64,000 bases of DNA from Monocercomonoides exilis PA203 (GCA_001643675.2 LSRY02000002.1:2170001-2234000); one strand, 5' to 3'; numbered from the stretch's first letter, positions 3,001-64,000 are shown. The notes: generated by a model from the letters alone, not told the origin. A program made the numbers and translations.

Positions 3001-6000
3001 TGAGAAAGCTGTTAAAGAGATAAATGAACTTAAAGAAGAGAATGCTGCATCTTCAATGAAGAGTGAAAGTGATCAGGTGAAATTGAAAGAAATGACTGAG
3101 AATTTGACTCAGAAGGAGGAAGAGATTGTTCACTTGAAAGAGAAGAAAGAAGAAATAGAAGCGAATTTAACGAATCTTCAAACAGAAATTGAAAGCGTCA
3201 AATCAGAAAGAGATCAAAAAGCAGAAGAAATTGCAAAGATTAGTGAAAGCAAGCAGATTATTGAGGCTCAATTAAAAGAAGTGGAAGATGAAATGAACAA
3301 CTCAAAAGATGAAATGAGTGAGTTGAATGCGAAATTAGCAAAAGTCGAAGAAGAGAAAACAAAAGCAATAGAAGAAATGAAGCAAGAATTGAATTCTGTT
3401 AATTCGAAATGTGCTTCTGTTGAAGCAGAATTGAAAGAGGTTAAAGAAAAAGAAGCTATTTCAGAAAAGGAGATAAAAGCGAAAGAAGAAGAATTAGCAG
3501 AGCTGAAGACTGAAATGGAACAAGTGAAAGAAGAGAACAAGGCAGTTAAAGAGAAATTTGAAGAAAATGAAAGAATAAAAGAGGAAAAATCAAAAGAGTT
3601 GAAAGATAAAGAAGAACAATTGAAAGAAACGGAAGAGATGATAAATGCACTAAAAGAGGAGAATAAAACAACATTAGAGAAATTAAACGAAGCAAACTCA
3701 GCAATCACTAACAAAGATGAAGCAATAGAAAATTACAGAAAAGAGATGGAAGATATGAAAAAGGAAAAAGATAGCTTGAATGAAGAATTATCGTTGATGA
3801 CAGAGAAAGAAAAGACAACAGAAGATAAATTGAACAAAGCTGTAGAAGAACTGGAAACAGTCAAAAACGAAAAGATTAGCGAAAAGGAAACATTTGAAAA
3901 AGAGATTGAAGAACTTCGAGTTCAAATTGAGACAGAAAAGAAAGAGAATGAAAAGCATTTGAGCGAATTAAACGACACAAAAGAAGCTAAAATGAACACA
4001 TTATCAGAAATTGTGGCGCTTCAAGCACTTGTGAAGACTGCAGAAGACAAAACGAATGAAAAAGAAGTGGAGATTTCTCAAATCAGAAAGCAATTAGAAC
4101 AGTTTGAAGAGGAAAACAAAGTAGTTACGCAAGAAAGAGATGCCTTGAAAGAAGATTTGGAGAAATCGAAAGAGGAAAATGTTGCATTACAGACACAGCA
4201 TGAGAAGGCAGTTGATGAATTAAACACAAAATTGAGTGAGGGAACAGCAGAAAACGAACAAACTGTGCAAAAACTGAGCCAAAGTCTGTCTGAAGAGCAA
4301 AGGAAATCAGAGGAGCTAACAAATAGTATATCAAATATGGAAAAGGAATTGAATGCAAAGAGTGAAGAAGTTGAGAGAGTTAATTTAGAGATTGAAACAA
4401 TTAAGAAAGCAAATGAAGAGGAGATGGCTTCTATTAAAAACAGATTGAATGAACTTGAGAAGGAGAAGGAAGCAGAAGCAGAAGAACTGAAGAAAGAAAG
4501 GGAAGCAGTAATTTCATTGAAGACATTAGTTTCAGAAGCAAATGAAGAGAAAGAGAAGCTTTCAGAAGAAATGAATGCTTTGAAAGAAGAACACACAAAA
4601 ACATTGAATGAAATGAACACTGCAAAAGAGGAGAATGAAAAGGCTGCTGCTGAATTAACTGTATTACAAACAAAGATAAACGAATTGGAAGAGAAATCCA
4701 AAGAGAATGAAGAAATATCTTCTCAATTGCAACAAAACATAACAGTATTAGAAGAGAAATTGAATGCTGAAAAAACTGAAAAGGAGAAACTTATGAATGA
4801 ATTATCAGATTCAACAAACAAATTCGATTCGACAAACGAGGAGCATCTTGAATTAAAAGAGAAATACGAAAAATTGGAGAAGGAAAAGATTGAACTGACA
4901 CAGCAATTGACTGAGCAAAAAACAGAAAGAGAAAGAGAAGCAGTTGCTCTTCAAGAAGAGATTGAATTAAGTCAAAAGAAACTGAATGAGGCTGAAGGGA
5001 TGCTGAGAGAGGCAGAAGCAAAAGCAGCTAAATCTGAAGCTGAGCTGGAGGCAAAGAACGAGGAAGTGCAAAAACTGCAGCTTGGAAGTGAAAAATTAGT
5101 AGCTCAAATAAAAGAAGTTGAAAACGAGAAACAAGAAAAAACGGAAGAATATGAAAAAGTGAAGAATGAATTTGAGCAAGTTATCGAGGAAAGAAAGAAG
5201 GAAAAAGAGCTTCTGGAACAAGATGCGGAAGATCTGAAGAAGAAAGTTAGCATTTTGAATGAAGAAATCGAAAACATTACGAATGAAAAGAACAAAAACC
5301 AGGAAGAGAAAGAGAAAGCGCAACAAGAAGTGGTTGCTGCTCAGTCTTTGCTGGATGAATCCAAAGAGAAATTAGAAAAGAACGAAGAGTCATTGAATCT
5401 TCTTAATCAACAAATTGAAGAATCGGAAAAGGAAAAGGAGAAAATGAATGAGGAAAGAAAACAATTGATTGAAGAATCCGAAAGATTGAAAGAAGAAAAA
5501 GATGCAAAAGAACAAAAACTCAAAGAAACAGAAGAAAAGCTGATGAAAGCGGAAACAGATGTAAATCAACTGAAAGATAGCTTTTCTCAACAAATTGATG
5601 AAAAGGATGTTCAAATAAAAGAACTTCAGGAATCATTACTTGCTGAACAGGCAAAGACAAGTGAAATGATAGAGAAATTGAATGAATCAGAGGAGAAATC
5701 AAGATTAGTCAGAGAAGAAGCTGAAAGCAAAGCAATAGAATTAGAAAAGATTGCTCAATCAAAAGATACAATTTCTGAAGAAAATGAAGCGAAATTTAGT
5801 GAATTGAATGTTAAGTTCGTTCAACTCGAAGAAACAAACAAAGAAATGAAGAAAGAACATGAAGAGCTGACTTCAATGAATGAAAAACTACAACAAGCAA
5901 ATGAAACATTGACAAAAGAAAAAGAACAACTTGCCTCAGAATTGCAAAGCGAACAAGAAAAGAATGCGAAATATTCTGATGATTTGAGGGTGCATCAAGA

Positions 6001-9000
6001 ACAGGTGCAAAAAATGGCTGAAGAGAAGACTGCAGCTGATGAAGCAAAAGAAAAAGAGATCGAAGAAATGAGGAAGCAATACGAATCAACACAACGTATT
6101 GTTGAAGACCTTGAACGATTGAACAAGCAACTGAACGAAGAGAAGGAAAGATTGAATGCTCAAATAGAGAAAAATGCTCAAGAGATTCTCATTGCAGAAG
6201 CAGAAAAGAACAACTTTGCTGCATTTATGGCGCAGGCTTCGACAGAAGCAGAAGTCAAAGCAAAAGAACATCAAACTGAAAAGGAGAAGTTACAAAGTGA
6301 AATGGAAGAGATTCAAAGGGAGTTAGAAGAAAAGAACAATCAACTTGTATTGTTGATTGCAGCAGATGCTGAATTGAAGAAAGAAGTCGATCTTTTAAGA
6401 GAAGAATGTGACACTGCAAAAGAAGAGAACAAGAAACTTCAGGAAAATCTAAATGACAAAACAGAATTGAATGAAAAATTAGCAGCAGCTGAACAGGCTT
6501 TGATAATTGAACGAGAAAAAACACGAACGACAGAAGAAGAAATAAATGAACTGCAAAAACAGAAAATGGAGATTGAAGCAAAGATTCAAGAAATGAATGA
6601 AGTAATTGTTAAAGTTATGAAAGAGAAGGAGATAATAAGCAAAGAGAAAGATGAAGAATTAAATCAATTGAAAGAAGAAATGAAGAAAATAGAGGAAGAA
6701 GAAAAATCTCAGTCTGCCTTGGATGAGTCTGCCAACATCGAAGCTATGCAAAAAGAAAAACAACAATTTGAAGTCGAAAAAGAAGAGTTGCTGAAAGAGA
6801 TTAGTGAATTAAATCTTTCTAAAACAGCACTTGAACAAAGCTCCAACGACTTTGAGAGACAACTCGAAGAAGAAAAGAAGCATTTGGCAGAAGTTGAAGA
6901 AAAAGCAAGAAAAGCAGAGGAACAATTGGAGAACACTGAGAAGGAACTTGAAGCTGTGAAAGAAGAGAGGCACAAGGAGAAAACTGAAGCAGAGCAGAAG
7001 ATATCAACACTGGAGCAGTTATTGAGACAGGAGCAAGTGAAGCTGAAGGAGTTGGAGTTTGACTATTCGAGGGTAGCAGAGAAGAAGAGCAGAATGGAAG
7101 CAGAGATGGAGGAACAGAACCAAAAGATGGACAAAATCCGAAAGGGAAAGGAGAATCTGATTGAAGAGAATGAGAACATGATAACAGAAATGAGGGAGAA
7201 GATCAGAGCACTGGAGAGAGACAAGGATGCAATGGAGGCGCAGATGCGGGAGACGATACAGAAAATGGAGATTGAAAGGGAAAAAGTGAAGTTGGAGGAG
7301 GCGAAGAAGAAGATGGAAGAAGAAGCAGCGAGGCAGATGACAGAGAGGATGAAGATGATACGTGAAGAGAACGAGAAGGATCTTCAGCAGTTTAGAGAAC
7401 AGCAGGCAAAGGACATTGAAATTATGAGAGCACAACTGATTGAGCTGAAGAGCTCATTGCAGATGGGGCGGACGCAGACAAACGAGGACAAAAATACCAA
7501 TCCGGACATACAAGAAGAGGAGGAGGAAGAGCAGGAGACGAAGAACAGAGAAGAGAAAGCAGCGAAGATTGATCAAATTTTGGATCAGACATCCACTTTG
7601 ATGAAACTGGGTGATGATGAGATTGCGACAATAAGAGGAAGAATGAATGAATTTAAACTAGTGAACGAGCCAGCAACCGCAGACAATGAGCAAAATGTAT
7701 CTGAAGAGGCAAATGTTCAGAGGGAATCTCAAATGATTGAGAAAAGTAGCTCTACTTGTCCAGGAGATGATGATGATGAAGAGAGAGCTAAAGAATCTTC
7801 AAGTGAACTCTTTGAGGAAGATGAAAAAGAAGAAGTTGATGAAGCAATTGATAAGAGAGAAAAGGAAAATGAGATTGTGAGACTAAAACAAGAGATTGAA
7901 GTCCTTCGAAAGAGGCAAGAAGAAATGATACAGGAGAATGAAAGGATGAAAGAAGAAAAAGAGCAAGTTGAAAAAGAGAAAGAAGAAATGACAGTCAAAC
8001 TAAGAGGAAAAGATGAGGAACTTGTAAAGATTTGCGAGAAGATGGGAATTGATGAAAAGGAACTGAAGAACAATGAAGAATCTATGTGTTTGATGAATAC
8101 CGAATATGTAAAGAAAAACGTTGAAGGCGAAGGAATGGAAATGAAAGAAGAGAAAGCTTCAGTTCCAAAACAACATGAAGGAAAAGGAAAAGAAGAAGAA
8201 CCACGAACTATTGAGGAGCAAAAGGAAAAAGAAGAAAGAGGATATTTGAGTATTCCAAAAGAAGACAATTTAATTTTGAAAGGTAATATTGAAGAAAAGG
8301 AAGTAGAAGGAAATAAGAAAATAACTCCAAAAGAAGAATGCATAGAAGAAGAAAATCAAGCCAATATAAAAGAAGAGATTGAACCTAAATCAACAACATC
8401 TCATTTACTGATCAAAACAGATGAAACTGTGAGGGAGAAAGAGACGTTGGAAAAGCTGTTGAAAGAAGAAAAGGAGAGGAGAAAGAAAGAAGAAGAAAAA
8501 GGAGCCGTTTCAGAAGCGAGAACAAAAGAACTGGAAGAAGAGATCGTGAGATTGCGAATGGAGTTGAGGAGCACAAAAGCAAAGAATGAAGAAGGACAGG
8601 CAAAAGAAGAAAATAAGGGAGTTGTTTCAACATCGATGTTGTTAGTGAAGAATGCAGAAGGAAATGAAGCATCAATAGAACAAACAAGACAAGCAATTTC
8701 AGATACTGAATCAACTGAAAACGAGATGAAAGCAGAAAGTGTGAATGAAGAAATAACTGAAGGCAGGAAAGAAGAAGAAAGTGTATCAAACAAATTGATG
8801 ATTATAGAGAATATAAAAAAAGGTGAACCCGAAGAAATGAAATGTGAAAAATCAAACAAGCCAAAAGAACTGTTAGAAAAAAATGAGAAAGAGGAAGGAA
8901 ATGAAAGCTCGGAATTAGTTGAGGCAAGAAAAGAGCAAATAGATGAAGAAATTGCGGATGTTTCTAAGTCGAAAGAAATGAAAGACGAAAAGAGTGAGGA

Positions 9001-53995: not shown

Positions 53996-56900
53996 TTAGA
54001 GCACCTCAATTACAGTAGCATCCTTATTTTGTTGTATTGCTCCTTCAAAATGCTTCTCTTTTTCGTTCGAAAGAGATGTGGTTGATCTTTTTCTTTTAAT
54101 TTCATCTTTATGAGATTCTGAATGCAAATGATTTTCATCAGTATCTTGAATTGATTCGCTTTTATTCCTTTTTGACTTTATATTTTTTATTGATGAGGTT
54201 TTTAATTCCGATGGACTGTTAGCCAAATTCGACAATTCTTCATCCTGTTTTAATATTGTTTTCCTTCTCCTTCCTTTACTCTGCTCAATGATTTTCTTCA
54301 TTTGCTGACTTTCATCTTTCAATGCTTTCATTCTGGATACTCTCAATTTTTCGATTTGCTTTTCATCCACATGGAAAAGGAAAGACGGAAGAATTATTCC
54401 ATTGTCATTTTGAGGGTCCAAAACCTTTGCAGCTACAATTTTCCCTTTCATTTCCTCCCTCTTAGCTTGAAGCATTGCAATTGCTAGAGTAGACACAAAG
54501 CGAAGATGCCTGTGAGATGTTGCGCGAGATGTTGAAGGAGTTGCAAGAATAGATGGAGAATTTGTAAATGCAGGCATTTGATCAAGCGACGGAGGAATAG
54601 CATCCGAACTTATAAGGCACAGTTCAGCGATATCTGTTAACTTTTGAAGAGCAGATGGGTTTGTGCTAACAACTGTATCTATGAAAAGACGTAGTGTTCT
54701 TGATATATAATTTTTGGCTGAATCGAGCGGAGTTTCGGCTTTTTGCTCTTCAGCATCCTTAGCATTCATATCATTATCAGAAGTGACTGATGAGAATGAA
54801 GACAAAGAAGATGAAGCAGATATCATCACAGGAAGATATAGCGGATGATGAGAAAGCACATGAATTAAATATGAGAAGGAATATTCTGGGAGGCGCAAAA
54901 AAGTATAAGATGGTGCAGGTACAGATGCTAATTGAGATAATTTATCCAAAGTCGAACTCAGATTGTACAGCGCATGCTTTCTACTCACAATTAAATGAAA
55001 ATCGCGCTTTGCTTGTGTTGCAATGCTTGGATTGCTTTCATCTTCACATTGCAAAACAACAATTGGTAGAAAGTAATGAAGCATCAAATTCTCTTCGATT
55101 AATCGACGGCTCACGAATTGTAATAATCGACTTCGAACAAATTGGGATGGATTTGTCGATACTGCTAAAACTAGCGATTCCCATTGCGTGGCAGACAGAT
55201 AATCGTGAAACGGTATTGCACATACAGGAGAATTACGAAGCAACCTAAAAATAATTATTGCAGCAGTTTGGGCGATTCGCATTCTGGTGATGGTGCAAAT
55301 ATGAGGAGCAGATTCTTCACTGGCTGAGCTTGCCATTGTAAATGTATTTGATTGTCGAGCTCTGAACAGAACTTTTGCTGCGCTTCGAAGATCTGGTGTA
55401 ATAATGTGGGCGGGGAATTCTGGATGCTGCAGAACAAGCTGCAATAAATTACTAAACAAAGCACGAGCAAAAAATAGCACTTTTCCTTCCTGAATTTCTT
55501 TAACTTTTGGCGATGTTATCTGGATTTCTTCCATCCCCGAGCCAGCAACTTTTGGAGTAATTAATGCAGAAAGCTGCTTTGCGGAAGAAGATGAAGGAGA
55601 AGCTTTTGATTGAACGTTCTGCGAAATTTCTGCTGCTATCTGCGAAGTTCGGTAAGATGGAGTCGTACGAGTAGGCTTTGATGGAGAGGATGATCGTGCA
55701 CTTCTCAACATTGCCTGCCTCGTTTGTATGCAATCCTGAGTCGAAGTAAATGGTGCAGCAATAACTTTTAATGCTAAAGATATCAATAAGCATTGGATAG
55801 AAGGAGAATCCCATTCAGAAGCAATGACAAGAGAAGAAGCAACATCAAAAATCTTTGATTTTTCAACTGAGTCCAATTTGTGCATTTCCGTAATCGTTAA
55901 AATCGGACTTAACTCGTTTTCTGAATCAAACTTTGTTCCATCCAAATTTTCTTTGTCAAAACTTTTCTTTTCTTCACCTTCAACATCCATATGATCGCTA
56001 TCTTCAGCATTTAGTGGCTTAAATGGCGTGGTTTGTGTTGTTTGCATTGGCTCCTCGTCAAATAAATCCATTTTCTTGGTGGATCTTCTATTTTGCTTTG
56101 AAGCTTTTGCTTCCAAAGATTGCTTTGTAGTTTCAGCAGATGCGTTTTTAGCATCAGATGATTGTTTCAATGCAATGATAAGCTGAGGATCGATTTCAGA
56201 TTCCCAATCTGTTTGAACAAAGACTTTCTCAATGACAACATGGGCTATTTTTTCGATGTTATTGATAGATACCCGCTCTGGAGCCTGCATTGCAGCTTGT
56301 CTCAAGAAAGTGAGGCTAAAAATCAAGGGATAAAGATGATCACGATGAAATGATACAGCGTTGAAGGCATTGAACGAACTGTGTGACAGCGTTGATCTAC
56401 GCGATGATAAAGTTGGCACAAATTGGTGCAATTGGCCACTACTATCATCTTCATCATTTTCTTTATTTTCGTCGTTGCCTTCTGCATAATCACCACAAAA
56501 GAAGCAGCTGTGATCTTGAACATTCTTTATCAACGAATCAATTATTGCTTGAAATAGTTCTTCTCCAAGTGGTTCAGGTAAGATGTTCAACAACGCATTA
56601 AATCCGTTCTTTGCTAACTGTTTTATGTACCTCAGTTTCTCCATCATTTCTTTATCTTGCTCAGAAGAATAAGAAAACGAATATTTGCCGCTATCTGATC
56701 TCATTGAAGAAAATCGAAATACCGACTTATCTTGCTTATCATCATCTTCTTCCATTTCGTTGGATCCGTTCATGTCATCTGAGTCAGGCAGTGCAAACGC
56801 CTCGACAAAGACATTGTGAAGAATCAATGGAACAAGAATAGCACAAAGTGGTTTCCCCAAAGTTTCAACGCCCAGATGAAGAATACACTGAAGTGCTTTT

Positions 56901-59900
56901 GCTTTAATATTCAAATCAAGAATATTGATTGGCCTAATCTCATCATCGTTTAATGAAGATTTTGTAGAATCATCCAATTCTTTTTCGCTTTCGTCGTCAT
57001 CATCATCCAAACTTTGGTTTGTGCTTGAATCAACACCAAGAAATAAGGCAAAGCACAAAAGCGATTGAAAATGACGTGCCACATCAAATGGCTCATTGTC
57101 CGTTAATGCAGTGAATGAAACAACTTTTCCACTATTACGTTGCACAAGTTGAGGTGGATTTAAAGAAGCAACTGAGCTATTTGAAGCACACAAAGATTGG
57201 CGAAGCTGAATAAGAGGTAATGACCATCCATCAGATGGATGTTGAGCAACATAATCATAAAACTGCTTGCCAAATGGAGAAGAGAAACTTTCAGGTGCAG
57301 CCATTTCCAGTGGAATCAAAAGTGGATATTTTTCACTTACGTATGAAACTTGACTAAGATGATATTCGTGATGTTGTTGGTCAGCTTGCATTAGATGTGT
57401 GCGTTGAGGAGAAGACGGTAATTTCTTCGTTTCTTTTGATGGCTTCTTTCCAACCGCTTTGTTACTTTGACTTGCAGATTTTCTTCCTTTTTGTTTTTTG
57501 GATTTTGAATCCTCATCTTCAATGGCAATCACGCTTGTCTTTTCTGGGACTGAACTAATGTCAAAATCAACAATCGATTTACTTCCTTCTGTAGTGGTGG
57601 TAGTAGTTGTTGTTACGCTGTTCAAAACTGAAAGAGAAGCCAAGAAACTCGCATCAGACAGTTGATTGAGGCATTGCTTTGATTCAGTGAAAATATCGCA
57701 ATGCTCCAATTGATCATCTGTCTTCACATTTTCCCCTTCATCGATCATTTCATCTTCTATTACCATAATATCTTTATTTGCGCTCACTGTTTTCGATGAT
57801 TTAGATCGTTTTGTTTTCCTCTTCTTTGCAGGTATATCATCGGCATCAACAAGCTCTTTGTCTTCATCTATTTCCTTAATTTCAGTTTTATCTTCAGTTT
57901 TGTTTGAAGCATTATCTACTGGCAAAACATTCAACGAAAACAATGTCGGAAATGATTCGCAAAGCAACTAAAAAATGAACATTGGCATCGCGAAAGATTA
58001 TAAATGAAATGAAAAAGACAATGAAGGAAAACGAAAGATAATGAATTATCAAACCTCAATCAAATTCAATCCGTTCAACATTAATTTTTTTGCCCGTCTA
58101 GATTTCTCCTCATTGCCGCCTATAACAAACTGTGGGATGTCTAAATGATAGTAATTCGTTGTTCCATCATTCACCTTTTCAAAGTTTGAAGTTTCTTCAT
58201 CTTCATCTCCTTTCTTATTTCGGCGTTTGTTCTTCGACTTCACTTTTTCATCAGAAAAATTGTCTTCAATTTCTCCTTCGTTTTGCTTCGAAAAGTCGGG
58301 CATCATGATGCATGAGCTTATAAACTCGCACAATCCTATTGAATTCTCCAAAATATCAATTAGCACTCTGAATTGCTTCTTATCTTTCTTCATTCTCTTC
58401 GTTTCTTGTTGGACATCGCTTTCATTTTTATATCGAAGAAACGGAATTAAATGAGACTTGACTTTTCTGTCATTTAACTGCTTCCATTGGCCAAATCCAG
58501 CTGTTATCATCAGTAAAGCATTTGCTGAATCCGAATTACAAAGCAAAAACATGCTGTTTCTAACGATATTGACAACTGACCACTCAGACACTATCGCTTC
58601 TCTTGTTTCAGAAGCACTGGATGAAGAAGAAGAAGCAATAGGCGCAGAAATATGAGAAGATCGGAGCAGTTCAACGAGACGAAGAATTAGCTTTGACTAA
58701 TATCGCGATTTTTGAAAGCATTAACAGCATAATGATAAAAATATTGCATATAAAATTGAATATTCATCAGATATATCATAGAGAACAACATAATTTACTT
58801 ATCAAAATCAAACCATTCTATTCCTGAGCTCAAAATGAGAGCAAGATGGGTGCAAGCTCATGTTGATCAGCAATTGCCATTCGCGGCAAATGTCGTATGT
58901 CAAAAGGGAATTCAGAACTGCGATGGTCAAGCGATTTACGGGATCATCGCTAAACCATGCCAGCAAATCTGCCAGATGTGCATCGCTCAAACGCCTAATG
59001 CCAGTTTTAGCAGAATCTGCCTGTTTTGATTTTGCACGATTATTTGATGCAGCCTCTTGCGAAGCTTCTTCAGTGTTAGCTTGTGACATTTCTTCCATTT
59101 TGGAGCGAAGATACTTTTCAAAGCAGTTGATGATGCGAGAGCGCATTTTCAGAAATCTGCCAAAAATATCTTGTTCTTTGGAAGTATTCAGAAGCGAGAA
59201 AAATCGAAGAAGGTTCATCGCTCGCTTGTTAGAAGGTAAATACTGGCTTATTATCACATCCTCCAACATCATAATCACCATGCTCCTGTAAAATACAAAA
59301 AAACATTTTTGATAAATTGCATAAAAAATCGCAAATAAAAGGAATCTGTATATAAATATAATTTTTATCTGACCTTGAAGTTGGCAAGAATGCGTGTGAC
59401 AGCAGCTTCGAAGGTGTTGAATAGAACACCTTTCGGGCTTCTAAAAGAGATGCGAAGTCAGCCGGTGAAGAAGCTATAACTGAATAGAATTCTTGAAGCA
59501 GAGGTGAAAGAGCTTCTTGGTTTGATGTTGATTGCAGTGCCTCTGTTTTTGTATTTTCCTCAGCTGGAGATGGATAGAACAAATCAAGTTTACCAGCATT
59601 CCACCATCGAAGAAACACGAACGTCACCCAGAAAAATGTTTCTTCTCTATTTCTGTCTTTTTTATCCATCAGACGAGACAAGCACATCGCATACGAACTT
59701 GGTTGAATGCATGTTGGCGATTGCAAACAGAGCGAAAGCATAGATTGAATTGCGGTCAGCCGAACATCTGGAATCTGATCTTCAACACGTGCACATAGAG
59801 GTTCTGAAAAGAATGATAAATAAAGTTCATTTTACAAATAATATAAAAATGAATAATGCATTTATCATTCAAGCAGTATTCATTTTAAGTTAATGAATGA

Positions 59901-61238
59901 TCAGAAATTATAAATTCAAAAAAATAGAAAGTTTACGAAATAACCTTCAAAACGTTTCAACCAAGACTGATCTCGGAAGCATAATGTTGTAATTGTTGAA
60001 ATAAGCGTTGTTCGTATCGTCTCTGAAACATCATTCAATCTTCCTATCCAAAACATGAAAAGTGGATATTGTGCAATGTTTGTTGCATTAACAGGACAGC
60101 CCGGATAAAGAATCATTGCCGATACCAAATTGACAAAAGCAATTCTGTTCGTTTCAATTTCACTCTTAAAAGAAAAAGATTAATACAACAATTTGAAAAA
60201 TCGTTTCAGAAAAGAAATATAAACCTTCATTGCTTGTTCTATCATTGGATAAACAAAAAACAAAGATTCTGGAGAAATTGCATTCAGCTCTACTAAAATA
60301 GAAACAAAATCATCCTTTATTGTAAACGGTACAGGAATTTTCTTTTTCCCTTTTGATTCTTTATATTTTCGAATACTTTCTTCATAAGCCTCAAGCGGAT
60401 CGAACAACATTTTTTCGAAAAAGTGAGACAATGGGCGTTGAAAATATTTTCCGCATCGACGAAATATTTCACGAACCAATGCTAATGTTTCAGGATATTC
60501 ATCTTTTTTCGAAAAATAAATTAAAAACTGTTCAAGTGTTGGACGAGTAATTTCATCTCCTGACGTAATCATATCTTGAAGAATAGATGAAAGAAGAGGA
60601 ATACATGTTGCGTCATTTTGAGAACTTTCAAAGTATATTTGTAACAAAATATTAATAAGTGCGAAATCACAAACTTCGGAATTTGAAGCAATTTCCCAAA
60701 TACTCCAGTGAGGAATTCAGCATCATTAAAATCAAGAACAAGTATAAAAGCCTTCATTTGCTCTAATTTCTCAAGGATTTCAAAAATTTGTGTATAATAT
60801 GGAAACTTGATATCCTTGAGATAACTAAATGTTTGTAGAATCTTCCGAAAAACAACCTTTTGAAATAATTTAGTGTTTTCGCAAAAAAGAATTACATTCT
60901 TAAAAAGAACAATTATAATAAAATTTCAAACTTTTTGTTGGCTTTGCGAAAGTGGAATTTCAGCAACATAAATTCGAAATATTTCTACGATGCACGATAA
61001 GGACATAACAAGAATATCATTTCCCGTGTTTGAAAGAGAAGCTATAAGATTTTCTAACAACGAGTTCACATTATTCACTGTACTTTTATATTTTAATTTT
61101 TTGAGAGTTTCATATAAATCCTTTCATAAAATAGCTCTCATTAAAAGTCATGATAAATTAAGGCACTTATCATACATTAAGATATTTTATAAGTTTTCCT
61201 TGTGTAGTTGGAAATTTAGAACTTAAAGGATCTGACAT
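53996..61238 (-). CDS. PDS5: Sister chromatid cohesion protein PDS5 (HEAT-repeat cohesin regulator), 9 exons
   Basis: Introns 61121-61175, 60857-60931, 60625-60674, 60165-60224, 59804-59944, 59286-59373, 58697-58813 and 57968-58054 (all GT-AG) give one reading frame. Pds5-like motifs: SCIVEIFRIYVAEIP, LKDIKFPYYTQIFEILEKL, WIGRLNDVSETIR, RVEDQIPDVR, RLMDKKDRNREE, LPEYSFSYLIHVLSHHP; basic disordered tail. Confidence 0.9.
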
Positions 61239-61913: not shown

Positions 61914-64000
61914 ATGTGTATATTTACAATATCGTTTCTGGTATTTAATTTCGCAAGTTGTGAACTGAAAATTACTGGTTATGAGATCAAAAGATGCACT
62001 GAAAATTATCAATCACTGAACAATTCGTGCTATAATAGGGTTGTGCTTGATTTTTACGTTGACAATAATGATACAGAACAAAGTTTAACTGCGACACTTC
62101 CATCAAGTTTTCTATTTTACATTTTAAAATTTGAAAAAATAATTATTTTAACAACTTTAACCCGTAAAATAGAAATTCAAATATTTTCTGAAACAGGACA
62201 TTCATGGATAACAAAAGAGAATATTAATGTGACAATTAACATTCCTTCGGTTGAATATGGTTCGCTTTTTATAAAAAAAAATATTTAATTAATTTCTTCT
62301 AGAATTTGCATTTATGAACAAGGAAATTATGAAAGAAGGATTTGAAATTGTAGAGGACAGGACTGTACAACGAGCTAACACAGTAGATTGCCCGATCCAG
62401 AATAAATCTCGTTCATTCAAATTATCTGGAAAAGAAATGATTATGTACGAAATATCACAACCTCTTTTAAAAGTTTGTCTCTTTCCCGTTTATCACTTTT
62501 CTATTTTTAAATACTAATAAATATAATAGGGAAATTTTAATATTACAATTTCTGTTTGTGAACGAAATATAACACTTTCTACTTCTTTCTTGAAGCCTGT
62601 CACAAGTAAAACAGAATTAAATGTTTGCGCACTTGCATAATTTTGAAATTACTATTTAATTCATTGCATTTCAAATTATGTCCTTTTTTTTTTATGTACG
62701 AATTATTAAAGTTTTCAAGCAATGAAGTTCTTCTGAAAATGGACAGCAACTTAATTGACTCCCAGGATCACAAAGGAAGTGAAGAGTGGACAGGATCACT
62801 CAATAATTACATTGTGGGTTATATACGTTCAAACATTTCATATGAACCATTGACATTTGAAGAGTTGTTGGAGGGAAGAATCTTCCAGAGCAAAGCCGTG
62901 TGGAAGAATACAGAACTTAAGCGAATTACAGGACGGTTGCAAAACTGTGAGGAAGCTGAAGGAAAGATTGGAATGGAAGAGAAATGCTATTTGATGAGGA
63001 TCAATTGCGACCTTCCAGAAGATGCAATAACAAGTACACATGCCGATTACCCAAAAGAATCGTTTGCTGCTGAAAACATTACGCTTAAAGAGTATTTTAG
63101 TCGCAATAACATAACTTTGGATGGTATGTTCATTGTTAATCTCAAGTGTATTTAAAAAATATGTCTTTTTCTTTTTTATTAGTTTCACAAGATTTCAACA
63201 TCACATCACTTCTTGGTAAAGCCAATCATGCACCAAATTTTTCTTTTCAACTTTGCATTCCTTTAGACGCGCTGTCTCTTGAAGATCAGAACGCAGAACC
63301 CGTTATTGAGTCTATTGGTGCAATGATAGGAATGCAAACAGAAGCATTGGACGGAAGAGCGGATATTCGAGGACCAAAGCTGGTTGGGTTTGTGGATGTG
63401 CTGAACAAAGGAAAGCCTCACGGCGTGACTGTTATGGCGGATAAGTGCAGGCTGGACGAGCGGAGTCCCTTCGACCCAGAAAGAGATGCAGTTGGAACGT
63501 GCCATTCGCTTAGTGTTGAAGGAGGCCCAATCACAACTTATGAATTAGGCGAAGGAGAACTACATAGATTCTATTTCAAGGTCGTTGAGAGTCTCGGAAG
63601 CAAAGACAATGAAGGAAAGAGTTATATGGAGGGAGATATAAAAGGAGGAAAGGACAAATGCGATGAGAATGTTGCAGAAGCAGCCGAAAGAGTTCACTGC
63701 ACCGTTCGAGTTCTGCAAAATGGATTTGAAGAAGATTCGAGAGAAATGTGGTTTGCGGACTACTTAGAGTTTCAGAAAGAAGTTGAAAGAAACAGCACCA
63801 AAAGCAACGCACAACGCAGAATTGGTAGTGTTAGTTCGACAAATAAAATTGTTAACACTGAAAGCGACTCTAACGGTGAAAGCAGTTATGGTCAAATGCC
63901 CACAAAAGAACTTCTGAAGTATTTGTCAAAGTCAAAGAAGGTTGATACTATTTTAGAAGATGATGCTCCTGCAAGTGTCAAAAACGCAGGATTCGTCTGG
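61914..64000 (+). CDS. HAP2/GCS1-like class II fusogen (fusexin) homologue, divergent with shortened domain II; at least 7 exons, 3'-partial
   Basis: Introns 62107-62172, 62260-62302, 62473-62529, 62623-62711, 63124-63182 and 63216-63266 give one open frame to the window end. Signal peptide, then collinear HAP2-like landmarks: IKRC-x10-CYNRVVLDFYV, NINVTINIPSVEYEF...GFEIV, QRANTVDC, MYEISQPLLKGNFNITISV, KIG-x10-C..P, and domain III-like LDALSL...PVIESI...EALDG...VLNKG...C...FYFKV...CTVRVLQNGFEEDSREMWF. TM segment not reached. Confidence 0.72.

Follow-up and report, generated by a model that had tools for sequence, protein, structure and literature searches.

Does a gene of the protist Monocercomonoides exilis encode a relative of the gamete fusogen HAP2 that has given up the canonical means of inserting into a target membrane and, if so, how might such a protein act? 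To our knowledge, no gamete fusogen other than HAP2 is broadly conserved. Among the questions that its relatives raise are how they diversified, whether HAP2-type proteins act from one or from both membranes and why some lineages seem to be without HAP2. Monocercomonoides is a mitochondrion-less protist, and we know of no observation of sex in M. exilis. The gene considered here starts at position 61914, on the plus strand, of a 64,000-nucleotide stretch of DNA from strain PA203 (LSRY02000002.1:2170001-2234000; the window) and continues beyond the last letter of that stretch. A preliminary description, made from the sequence alone, had read it as an intact but miniaturized HAP2/GCS1-like fusexin that appeared to have lost its fusion-loop tip. 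Here we find that the gene is intact and transcribed, that the HAP2 orthologue of the organism is a different gene, on contig C10, and that the encoded protein belongs to a family, present in oxymonads and other protists, with a very short, polar and cysteine-poor domain II tip and an EGF/TNFR-like, disulfide-rich rod before the membrane. Our preferred reading, to which we give a probability of roughly 0.6, is that the gene encodes a divergent, stalked HAP2-like fusexin of a separate, unannotated protist family, which is not a HAP2 orthologue and probably acts in trans or in partnership with HAP2.

An intact and transcribed gene

The gene comprises six exons, running from 61914 to the window-equivalent position 65566 and followed by a TAA stop codon at 65567-65569, with five GT..AG introns between them (62107-62172, 62260-62302, 62473-62529, 62623-62711 and 63124-63182). 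Its exons, and one stretch within the last of them, are as follows (aa, amino acids).

61914-62106, plus strand: exon 1, aa 1-64, with the start codon, the signal-like N terminus (aa 1-16) and the first strands of domain I; RNA joint 62106|62173
62173-62259, plus strand: exon 2, aa 65-93; RNA joints
62303-62472, plus strand: exon 3, aa 94-150, with the long, tip-bearing hairpin of domain II; RNA joints
62530-62622, plus strand: exon 4, aa 151-181, a second, tight β-hairpin (GNFNITISVCERNITLSTSF); RNA joints and model strands
62712-63123, plus strand: exon 5, aa 182-318, the remainder of domain I plus the poorly modelled second insertion of domain II; RNA joints
63183-65566 (window part to 64000), plus strand: exon 6, with the end of domain I, domain III, linker, stalk, transmembrane helix and tail; open reading frame, database protein P0001 and RNA
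63216-63266, plus strand: GT..AG stretch read as an intron in the preliminary description; exonic, 51 nucleotides, in frame and present in P0001

All five introns, and no others, appear as joints at 100% identity in RNA contigs from four runs of a single study, recorded as 'synthetic metagenome' metatranscriptomes; a mature mRNA of the gene therefore exists. The contigs begin at 61930-61938, that is, 16-24 nucleotides past the ATG (61914), leaving the start codon itself uncovered, and they reach to about 65690 with no further joint after the last acceptor. The six joined exons translate exactly to P0001, a protein of 1113 aa recorded for the same 2.63-Mb contig, as determined by script comparison. 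The RNA joints and this identity bear out the earlier view that scattered open reading frame fragments from 61914 onwards make up one protein with a hydrophobic, signal-like N-terminal segment, and the transmembrane helix and tail that had been expected past the end of the window are both found there, in one open frame to 65566. The last exon had been misplaced: it starts at 63183, not at 63267, as seen from the acceptor joint 63123|63183 in the RNA contigs. No RNA contig spanning the stretch 63216-63266, the 3′ part of which is pyrimidine-rich, has it spliced out; its use as an intron, rarely or under particular conditions, is conceivable and would cost 17 residues near the junction of domains I and III. 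The frame is without downstream stop or frameshift and the gene is thus not a pseudogene, in agreement with its earlier description as intact. As a separate observation, the spliced mRNA is identical to the genome in each of the runs (X1-X4), which therefore probably come from a xenic culture of the same organism.

The protein opens with a signal-like hydrophobic segment (aa 1-16, MCIFTISFLVFNFASC), followed by an ectodomain core (aa 17 to about 500) with 12 cysteines in about 480 aa, a Ser/Lys-rich linker of about 150 aa (about 500-655) and a stalk region (aa 655-790) with a further 12 cysteines at 664-781. A predicted transmembrane helix at aa 804-826 gives a type I single-pass topology. Right after it comes a cysteine cluster, CGCCTCC (aa 831-837), and then a cytoplasmic tail of about 280 aa, extending to aa 1113, in which Lys-rich runs occur together with acidic Ser/Asp runs. 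HAP2 orthologues have polybasic tails with possibly palmitoylated cysteine motifs (PMC8777248), and the sequence here suggests a HAP2-like, palmitoylatable cluster followed by a polybasic tail.

A predicted class II fold

An AlphaFold2 model of aa 17-520, built from an 8-sequence alignment (protein numbering is model numbering +16), is mostly β, with a mean predicted local distance difference test (pLDDT) of 55.8 and a predicted template modelling score of 0.44; pLDDT falls below 50 at aa 236-268 and 284-304, both in exon 5. When this model was compared with the Protein Data Bank (PDB) using Foldseek, the best 50 of 244 matches (E ≤ 0.001) were all class II fusogens, headed by the HAP2 structures of Arabidopsis (E 4.7e-11), Chlamydomonas and C. 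merolae and followed by alphavirus E1, EFF-1 and the Gc glycoprotein of Crimean-Congo haemorrhagic fever virus. An exhaustive VIA-align comparison with 48,161 chains ranked HAP2 first; the alignments of more than 230 residues were all to class II fusogens, and the remaining rows were matches to the Ig-like domain III only. The leading VIA-align values were as follows (rmsd, root mean square deviation).

HAP2 7s0k: 9.2, 356 residues, model 6-477
Archaeal Fusexin1 (Fsx1): 8.7-8.9, about 343 residues
Arabidopsis HAP2 (AtHAP2): 8.3, 339 residues
Chlamydomonas HAP2 (CrHAP2): 7.4-8.0, 361-363 residues
Alphavirus E1 1-294: about 7.8, model 27-339
P. berghei HAP2 domain 3: 7.9, 95 of 99 residues, rmsd 3.2, model 341-477

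A shape search of the ESM Atlas likewise returned the HAP2-GCS1 cluster first (276 residues). Template modelling scores are low (0.2-0.37) and rmsd values high, as would be expected from an imprecise model and from domain arrangements that differ between pre-fusion and post-fusion states. The window coordinates of domain III are as follows.

63296-63712, plus strand: domain III, aa 357-495, forming an Ig-like sandwich that includes a 'V-x-V-x-N-K-G' strand and a lineage-specific insertion

Foldseek, VIA-align and the ESM Atlas thus concur in a three-domain prediction for which HAP2 structures are the best match, and the class II assignment of the preliminary description is, as a model-based prediction, well supported. 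The evidence for our reading as a whole is computational, and the fold comes from one modest model. A pLDDT of 55.8 from 8 sequences, the want of sequence-profile support described below and a language-model feature search that gave only sub-threshold zona-pellucida-like rows would all be expected if the low confidence of the model had led to a spurious class II assignment, and the protein were a lineage-specific, β-rich surface protein unrelated to fusexins. We regard this as very improbable: a chance model would hardly match HAP2, Fsx1 and E1 over about 350 residues and three domains, or place HAP2 first both among 48,161 chains and in a separate predicted-structure library, and independent, collinear motif matches agree with it, as does the match of domain III of a relative, P0012, to the HAP2 profile.

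A second gene is the HAP2 orthologue

The spliced protein had been expected to match the HAP2-GCS1 profile, PF10699. It does not at E ≤ 10, whether searched exon by exon, as the whole of P0001 or as aa 17-520, and membership of that family by sequence therefore fails. Pfam scans of the exons and the whole protein also gave no match to the EFF-AFF profile at E ≤ 10, and the sole match that they gave is a weak one to EGF_Teneurin, in the stalk. A genome-wide scan with PF10699 found one locus only, C10:158794-161208 (167 bits, profile positions 1-514), which supplies the second, canonical HAP2 that the preliminary description had suggested looking for. Compared exon by exon, this gene matches solved HAP2 structures from T. 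cruzi (E 1e-19), Arabidopsis, Chlamydomonas and C. merolae. The canonical HAP2 locus gave nothing in a tblastn search with P0001, and a search of the genome gave no paralogue of either the ectodomain or the stalk.

Some features of the canonical gene are recorded here in their own right. Its PF10699 match falls into three pieces, and it encodes the AHCLRF and CNKIGTSYEAFWQQGNRC motifs, a transmembrane helix and a polybasic tail. Long (GT)n microsatellites are present in two or more of its introns (for example, L003 at about 2480-2545), and a micro-exon is possible between 'NNTRTK' and 'PACDKG'. For P0001, the zona-pellucida-like rows of the language-model atlas all lay below 0.9 and were treated as noise.

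A short, polar tip of domain II

The motifs on which the claim of a lost fusion-loop tip was built had been placed correctly: GFE lies at 62338-62346 (aa 106-108) and RANTVDC at 62371-62391 (aa 117-123), and coordinate mapping puts RSF at 62410-62418 and KIG at 62964-72. The two regions to which they belong are the following.

62344-62412, plus strand: shortened polar tip, with E108, the R113-N127 loop and R130 (E-IVEDRTVQRANTVDCPIQNKS-R) and one cysteine (C123)
62946-63008, plus strand: remnant of the HAP2 ij-loop signature, C260-x5-K-I-G-x4-C273-x6-C280; aligned by hhalign to canonical 'CNKIGTSYEAF' (E 0.069)

In the AlphaFold2 model, the tip is a hairpin formed by a strand at aa 82-112, a loop at aa 113-127 (pLDDT <50) and a strand at aa 128-144. 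From E108 to R130 there are 20-22 residues, polar in character, with one cysteine and no aromatic residue, and the R113-N127 loop itself has 15 residues and carries several charges. Judged from sequence, aa 109-131 have an interfacial energy of +10.4 kcal/mol on the Wimley-White scale, and no hydrophobic loop was seen in the rest of the ectodomain, where the 9-mers of highest hydrophobicity fall in predicted strands. In Chlamydomonas HAP2, by comparison, E126 is in strand b, cysteines 5-7 (aa 159-167) are in strand c, R185 belongs to a cd loop of 40 aa, and strand d starts near aa 208 (PMC5332557). The span from the Glu to strand d is therefore about 82 residues in that protein, and it is at least 74 in the canonical M. 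exilis gene. Liposome binding and fusion are both lost in the R185 and F192/W193 mutants of Chlamydomonas HAP2 (PMC5332557). The HAP2 tip is organized by a salt bridge that joins the Glu of strand b to an Arg of the cd loop.

The glutamate of the tip can be traced to HAP2 in two steps, as hhalign aligns E108 to the Glu of 'TYEKVIV' in canonical M. exilis HAP2, and that residue aligns to E126 of Chlamydomonas 'KPLEVIL'; the link from E108 to E126 is thus transitive. E108 is conserved among relatives, and R130, 22 residues after it, is kept in five of the seven aligned. The conserved Arg is accordingly R130, inside 'RSF', and not R117 of RANTVDC, which had been proposed for the role and is not conserved in relatives. 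'RAN-TVDC' resembles T184-R185-A186...C190 of Chlamydomonas, is found in no relative and may do so by chance. The strand boundaries put E108 and R130 on facing strands two registers apart, from which we infer that a salt bridge between them would be allowed. RSF had also been equated with the HCL motif of HAP2; when the family was compared by hhalign with the canonical exon that encodes AHCLRF, no alignment of any meaning resulted, and that exon alone had no match in the PDB.

Because all of the tip motifs lie within exon 62303-62472, which is continuous in transcripts, no missed exon fills the gap, as had been argued from the start. The tip is indeed short, polar and cysteine-poor relative to canonical HAP2, and at the level of sequence this shortness is real; what does not hold is the notion of a loss private to this gene. 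The tips of relatives, in Streblomastix, a marine protist and metagenomes, are equally short but have C-x5-CC, of which P0001 keeps the last cysteine only, and a Blattamonas protein is without the whole tip segment. A short tip is thus common to the protist family and is not a loss peculiar to the M. exilis gene.

The canonical HAP2 signature of the ij loop is C-[ND]-K-[IV]-G-x2-[YF]-x-A-F-x2-Q ... C-x6-C-L. The KIG motif of canonical M. exilis HAP2 aligns to those of solved HAP2s, such as 'CDKVGTGFSAF..Q' of Chlamydomonas. The corresponding region of P0001 keeps KIG and C-x6-C, without AF..Q, and other family members have N-x-I-G-M-S-Y. Whether the stretch after KIG is shortened, as first described, depends on the alignment: the family alignment gives the canonical length from IG to Cys, whereas one based on C-x6-C gives an 8-residue deletion, which would remove AF..Q.

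Could the protein nonetheless be a conventional, unilateral HAP2-type fusogen, with a membrane-binding surface that is small, like that of T. cruzi HAP2 with its three short loops, or that lies in unresolved parts of the model? Deletions are numerous in HAP2 tips, which are hypervariable (PMC6089408; PMC5332557), and viral class II cd loops, at only 10-15 residues (PMC5332557), match the size of the loop here. In addition, the second domain II insertion is unmodelled, and some family members have W, F or L near the C-x5-CC loop. Set against this are a 15-residue loop with several charges and no aromatic residue, the location of the most hydrophobic 9-mers in predicted strands and the presence of a canonical HAP2 already in the genome; we consider the idea distinctly unlikely.

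A family of stalked proteins in distant protists

Fourteen matches were obtained in a phmmer search of 1.84 billion representatives, 13 of them on the stalk; only P0014, from Streblomastix, touches the ectodomain, and BLASTP resolves its match to P0001 into two collinear segments. The proteins matched through the stalk share the overall build of P0001. Closest to P0001 are homologues in two oxymonads, Streblomastix strix and Blattamonas nauphoetae (P0002), and further members are the MMETSP transcript P0010 and the metagenome proteins P0004, P0008, P0011 and P0012. Five blocks are shared, in this order: D-x-x-G-R-x-W ... I-x-I; a Glu, 8-10 residues, C-P-x4-C-C, 4-6 residues, an Arg and Y-x2-Y-x-I; N-x-I-G-M-S-Y ... 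C; the domain III strand I-Y-V-x-V-x-N-x-G followed by C-C; and the stalk. As relatives are only about 24% identical, substitutions are saturated for estimates of dN/dS.

Several lines connect this family to HAP2. The exon 2 strand 'D/E-x-G-x-x-W ... I-N-V/I-T' is common to the family and to canonical HAP2 exon b, and the family profile aligned by hhalign to three canonical M. exilis exons, at strand b (E 0.0027), KIG (0.069) and the domain III N-x-G strand (0.091). Each of these matches is weak alone; jointly, and in collinear order, they are suggestive of kinship with HAP2. PF10699 recognizes no family member except through domain III of P0012 (positions 329-449, E 2.6e-5), at 23.5 bits, below the cut-off of 27.4. 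Family profiles searched against PDB sequences gave chance matches only. The P0012 gene lies on a JGI metagenome contig (L015); the N-terminal half that P0012 lacks, with the motifs of the family, is found in the open reading frame just upstream. On this 90.8-kb contig, the family member (4184-6344) appears as two overlapping gene calls, 4184-5023 and 5001-6344, a split presumably due to an intron, a frameshift or the use of a prokaryotic gene caller; an intron-poor eukaryote is the source of this contig, on which neighbouring genes encode MKT1, XPG, RhoGEF and an ABC transporter.

The stalk, which is encoded beyond the end of the window, has 12 cysteines conserved in an alignment of 13 sequences and no counterpart in canonical M. 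exilis HAP2. Its model (pLDDT 79, core 96) consists of small β-hairpin modules and an EGF-like unit; compared with the PDB, it had no match at E ≤ 0.001, and the weak rows were rods of the EGF/TNFR type (Pfs25, NELL2 and Notch). P0005, a 929-aa membrane protein from a GC-rich organism, is made up of about five tandem copies of the stalk module plus EGF unit, without a class II ectodomain, and the stalk module therefore also occurs as an independent repeat.

A long, cysteine-rich stalk is typical of adhesion receptors, and it brings in the main rival to our reading, in which the class II scaffold is kept, fusion activity is lost and the protein is a non-fusogenic surface protein: an adhesin, a receptor or a regulator, which might for example modulate the trimerization of canonical HAP2 or serve as a partner in gamete recognition. 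The polar, shortened tip, with most of its cysteines gone, would suit such a role, as would the finding of transcripts in ordinary culture-type RNA samples and not in a known sexual stage. Yet domains I-II-III, a long flexible linker, a transmembrane helix and a HAP2-like tail, which are what a fold-back fusogen needs, are kept across distant protists, and EFF-1 fuses membranes without a hydrophobic loop (PMC8784728). We judge this rival unlikely.

Genomic context

Upstream of the gene lies a PDS5-like gene on the minus strand. This cohesin-associated PDS5 gene is multi-exon (window 53996-60647; the piece 60183-60647 matches at E 1.8e-11) and includes an unbroken open reading frame of 1323 codons without a Pfam match. 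Downstream, in convergent orientation, is an 863-aa, Lys/Glu/Ser-rich open reading frame on the minus strand (window-equivalent 65930-68521), also without a Pfam match, and beyond it the first exon of BUD31 (L002 7204-7506, where L002 is 10 kb across the window end). No viral genes were found among the flanking genes, and there is no synteny with the Blattamonas locus beyond the stalk itself.

The alphavirus E1 and bunyavirus Gc structures among the matches raise the thought of an endogenized viral class II glycoprotein gene in place of a cellular HAP2 paralogue. Five RNA-confirmed spliceosomal introns and cellular flanks (PDS5 and BUD31) free of viral neighbours speak against it, as do homologues in other oxymonads and unrelated protists, HAP2 structures that outscore viral ones and the HAP2-type motifs and tail; we regard a viral origin as hardly credible.

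Proposed mode of action and implications

A polar tip would leave the protein without a hydrophobic loop or helix for an opposing bilayer. With no non-polar insertion element, HAP2-style anchoring in a bare target bilayer is unlikely, and action as a unilateral, virus-like fusogen would be improbable. EFF-1, which has an electronegative cd loop, is needed on both cells (PMC8784728); the non-hydrophobic loop is the reason that it acts bilaterally. Leishmania HAP2-2 and the Dictyostelium HAP2 homologues are likewise required on both partners (PMC10630298). By analogy, the M. exilis protein would more likely act in trans, through partner proteins of the opposing cell, or alternatively jointly with canonical HAP2, in a still unobserved cell or gamete fusion; its linker of about 150 residues would be long enough for fold-back. 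It is the missing insertion element, together with these precedents for a need on both partners, that makes a trans-acting or HAP2-partnered fusexin the most likely reading. A more specific version, which we advance tentatively and hold to be possible but doubtful, is that 'stalked HAP2-like proteins' form an unrecognized branch of eukaryotic fusexins, with a minimal polar tip, missed by HAP2 profiles and occurring in oxymonads and several further protist lineages, acting bilaterally or as the HAP2 partner on the opposite gamete.

A class II fusogen-like protein can, on this evidence, drift beyond the reach of HAP2 profiles with its predicted fold retained, in a family that spans distant protists, and such a divergent HAP2-like protein coexists with canonical HAP2 in one organism. 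If the short polar tip does reflect EFF-1-like trans action or partnership with HAP2, the two M. exilis proteins would be a natural pair for comparing unilateral with bilateral fusion, and fusogen surveys would be better based on structure than on profiles. Should the stalked branch prove true, protist fertilization would use two mechanistically different class II proteins, and surveys with HAP2 profiles would undercount fusogens, including in lineages said to lack HAP2.

Comparison with known fusexins

With HAP2/GCS1 (PF10699; structures 5mf1, 5ow3, 5ow4 and 7s0k), the M. exilis protein shares the predicted domain I-II-III fold and type I topology, a conserved Glu in the tip-proximal strand, a putative C-x-K-I-G remnant of the ij loop, the N-x-G strand of domain III, a juxtamembrane cysteine cluster and a polybasic tail. 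The ectodomain of HAP2 is marked by a signature pattern of 16 conserved cysteines (PMC5332557), whereas the M. exilis protein has 12 (aa 17-500), with a single tip cysteine (C123) where HAP2 has cysteines 4-9. About 22 residues replace the roughly 80 that form the bc loop, strand c and the 40-aa cd loop of HAP2; sequence points to neither a hydrophobic loop nor an amphipathic helix, and the AF..Q that holds R185 is missing. Additional features are a cysteine-rich stalk of about 140 aa and the linker of about 150 aa, in a protein that coexists with a canonical HAP2. The shortest HAP2 tip described, that of Trypanosoma cruzi (5ow4), also has short loops and no amphipathic helix, but its loops are non-polar and sit on a conserved, disulfide-bonded bdc sheet (PMC6089408), whereas the M. 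exilis protein has a polar loop and, of the cysteine framework, a single residue.

Two HAP2-type genes per organism have been described in other protists, namely, Plasmodium with HAP2p, Leishmania with HAP2-1 and HAP2-2, and Dictyostelium with HgrA and HgrB (PMC10630298). The members of the Leishmania pair have a recognizable GCS1 domain (PMC10630298); the M. exilis protein, by contrast, is invisible to the profile and belongs to a distinct, stalked family. The nematode somatic fusogens EFF-1 and AFF-1 have the class II fold and a non-hydrophobic cd loop in common with it, but there is no EFF-AFF profile match, EFF-1 ranks 26th in Foldseek and is absent from the VIA-align top 50, and the motifs and tail of the M. 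exilis protein are HAP2-like. Fsx1 (7p4l) differs in being archaeal, with an rmsd of 28.7-29.0, indicating poor global superposition, and no sequence link. Where Fsx1 has an extra domain IV, the additional module of the M. exilis protein is a cysteine-rich rod after domain III.

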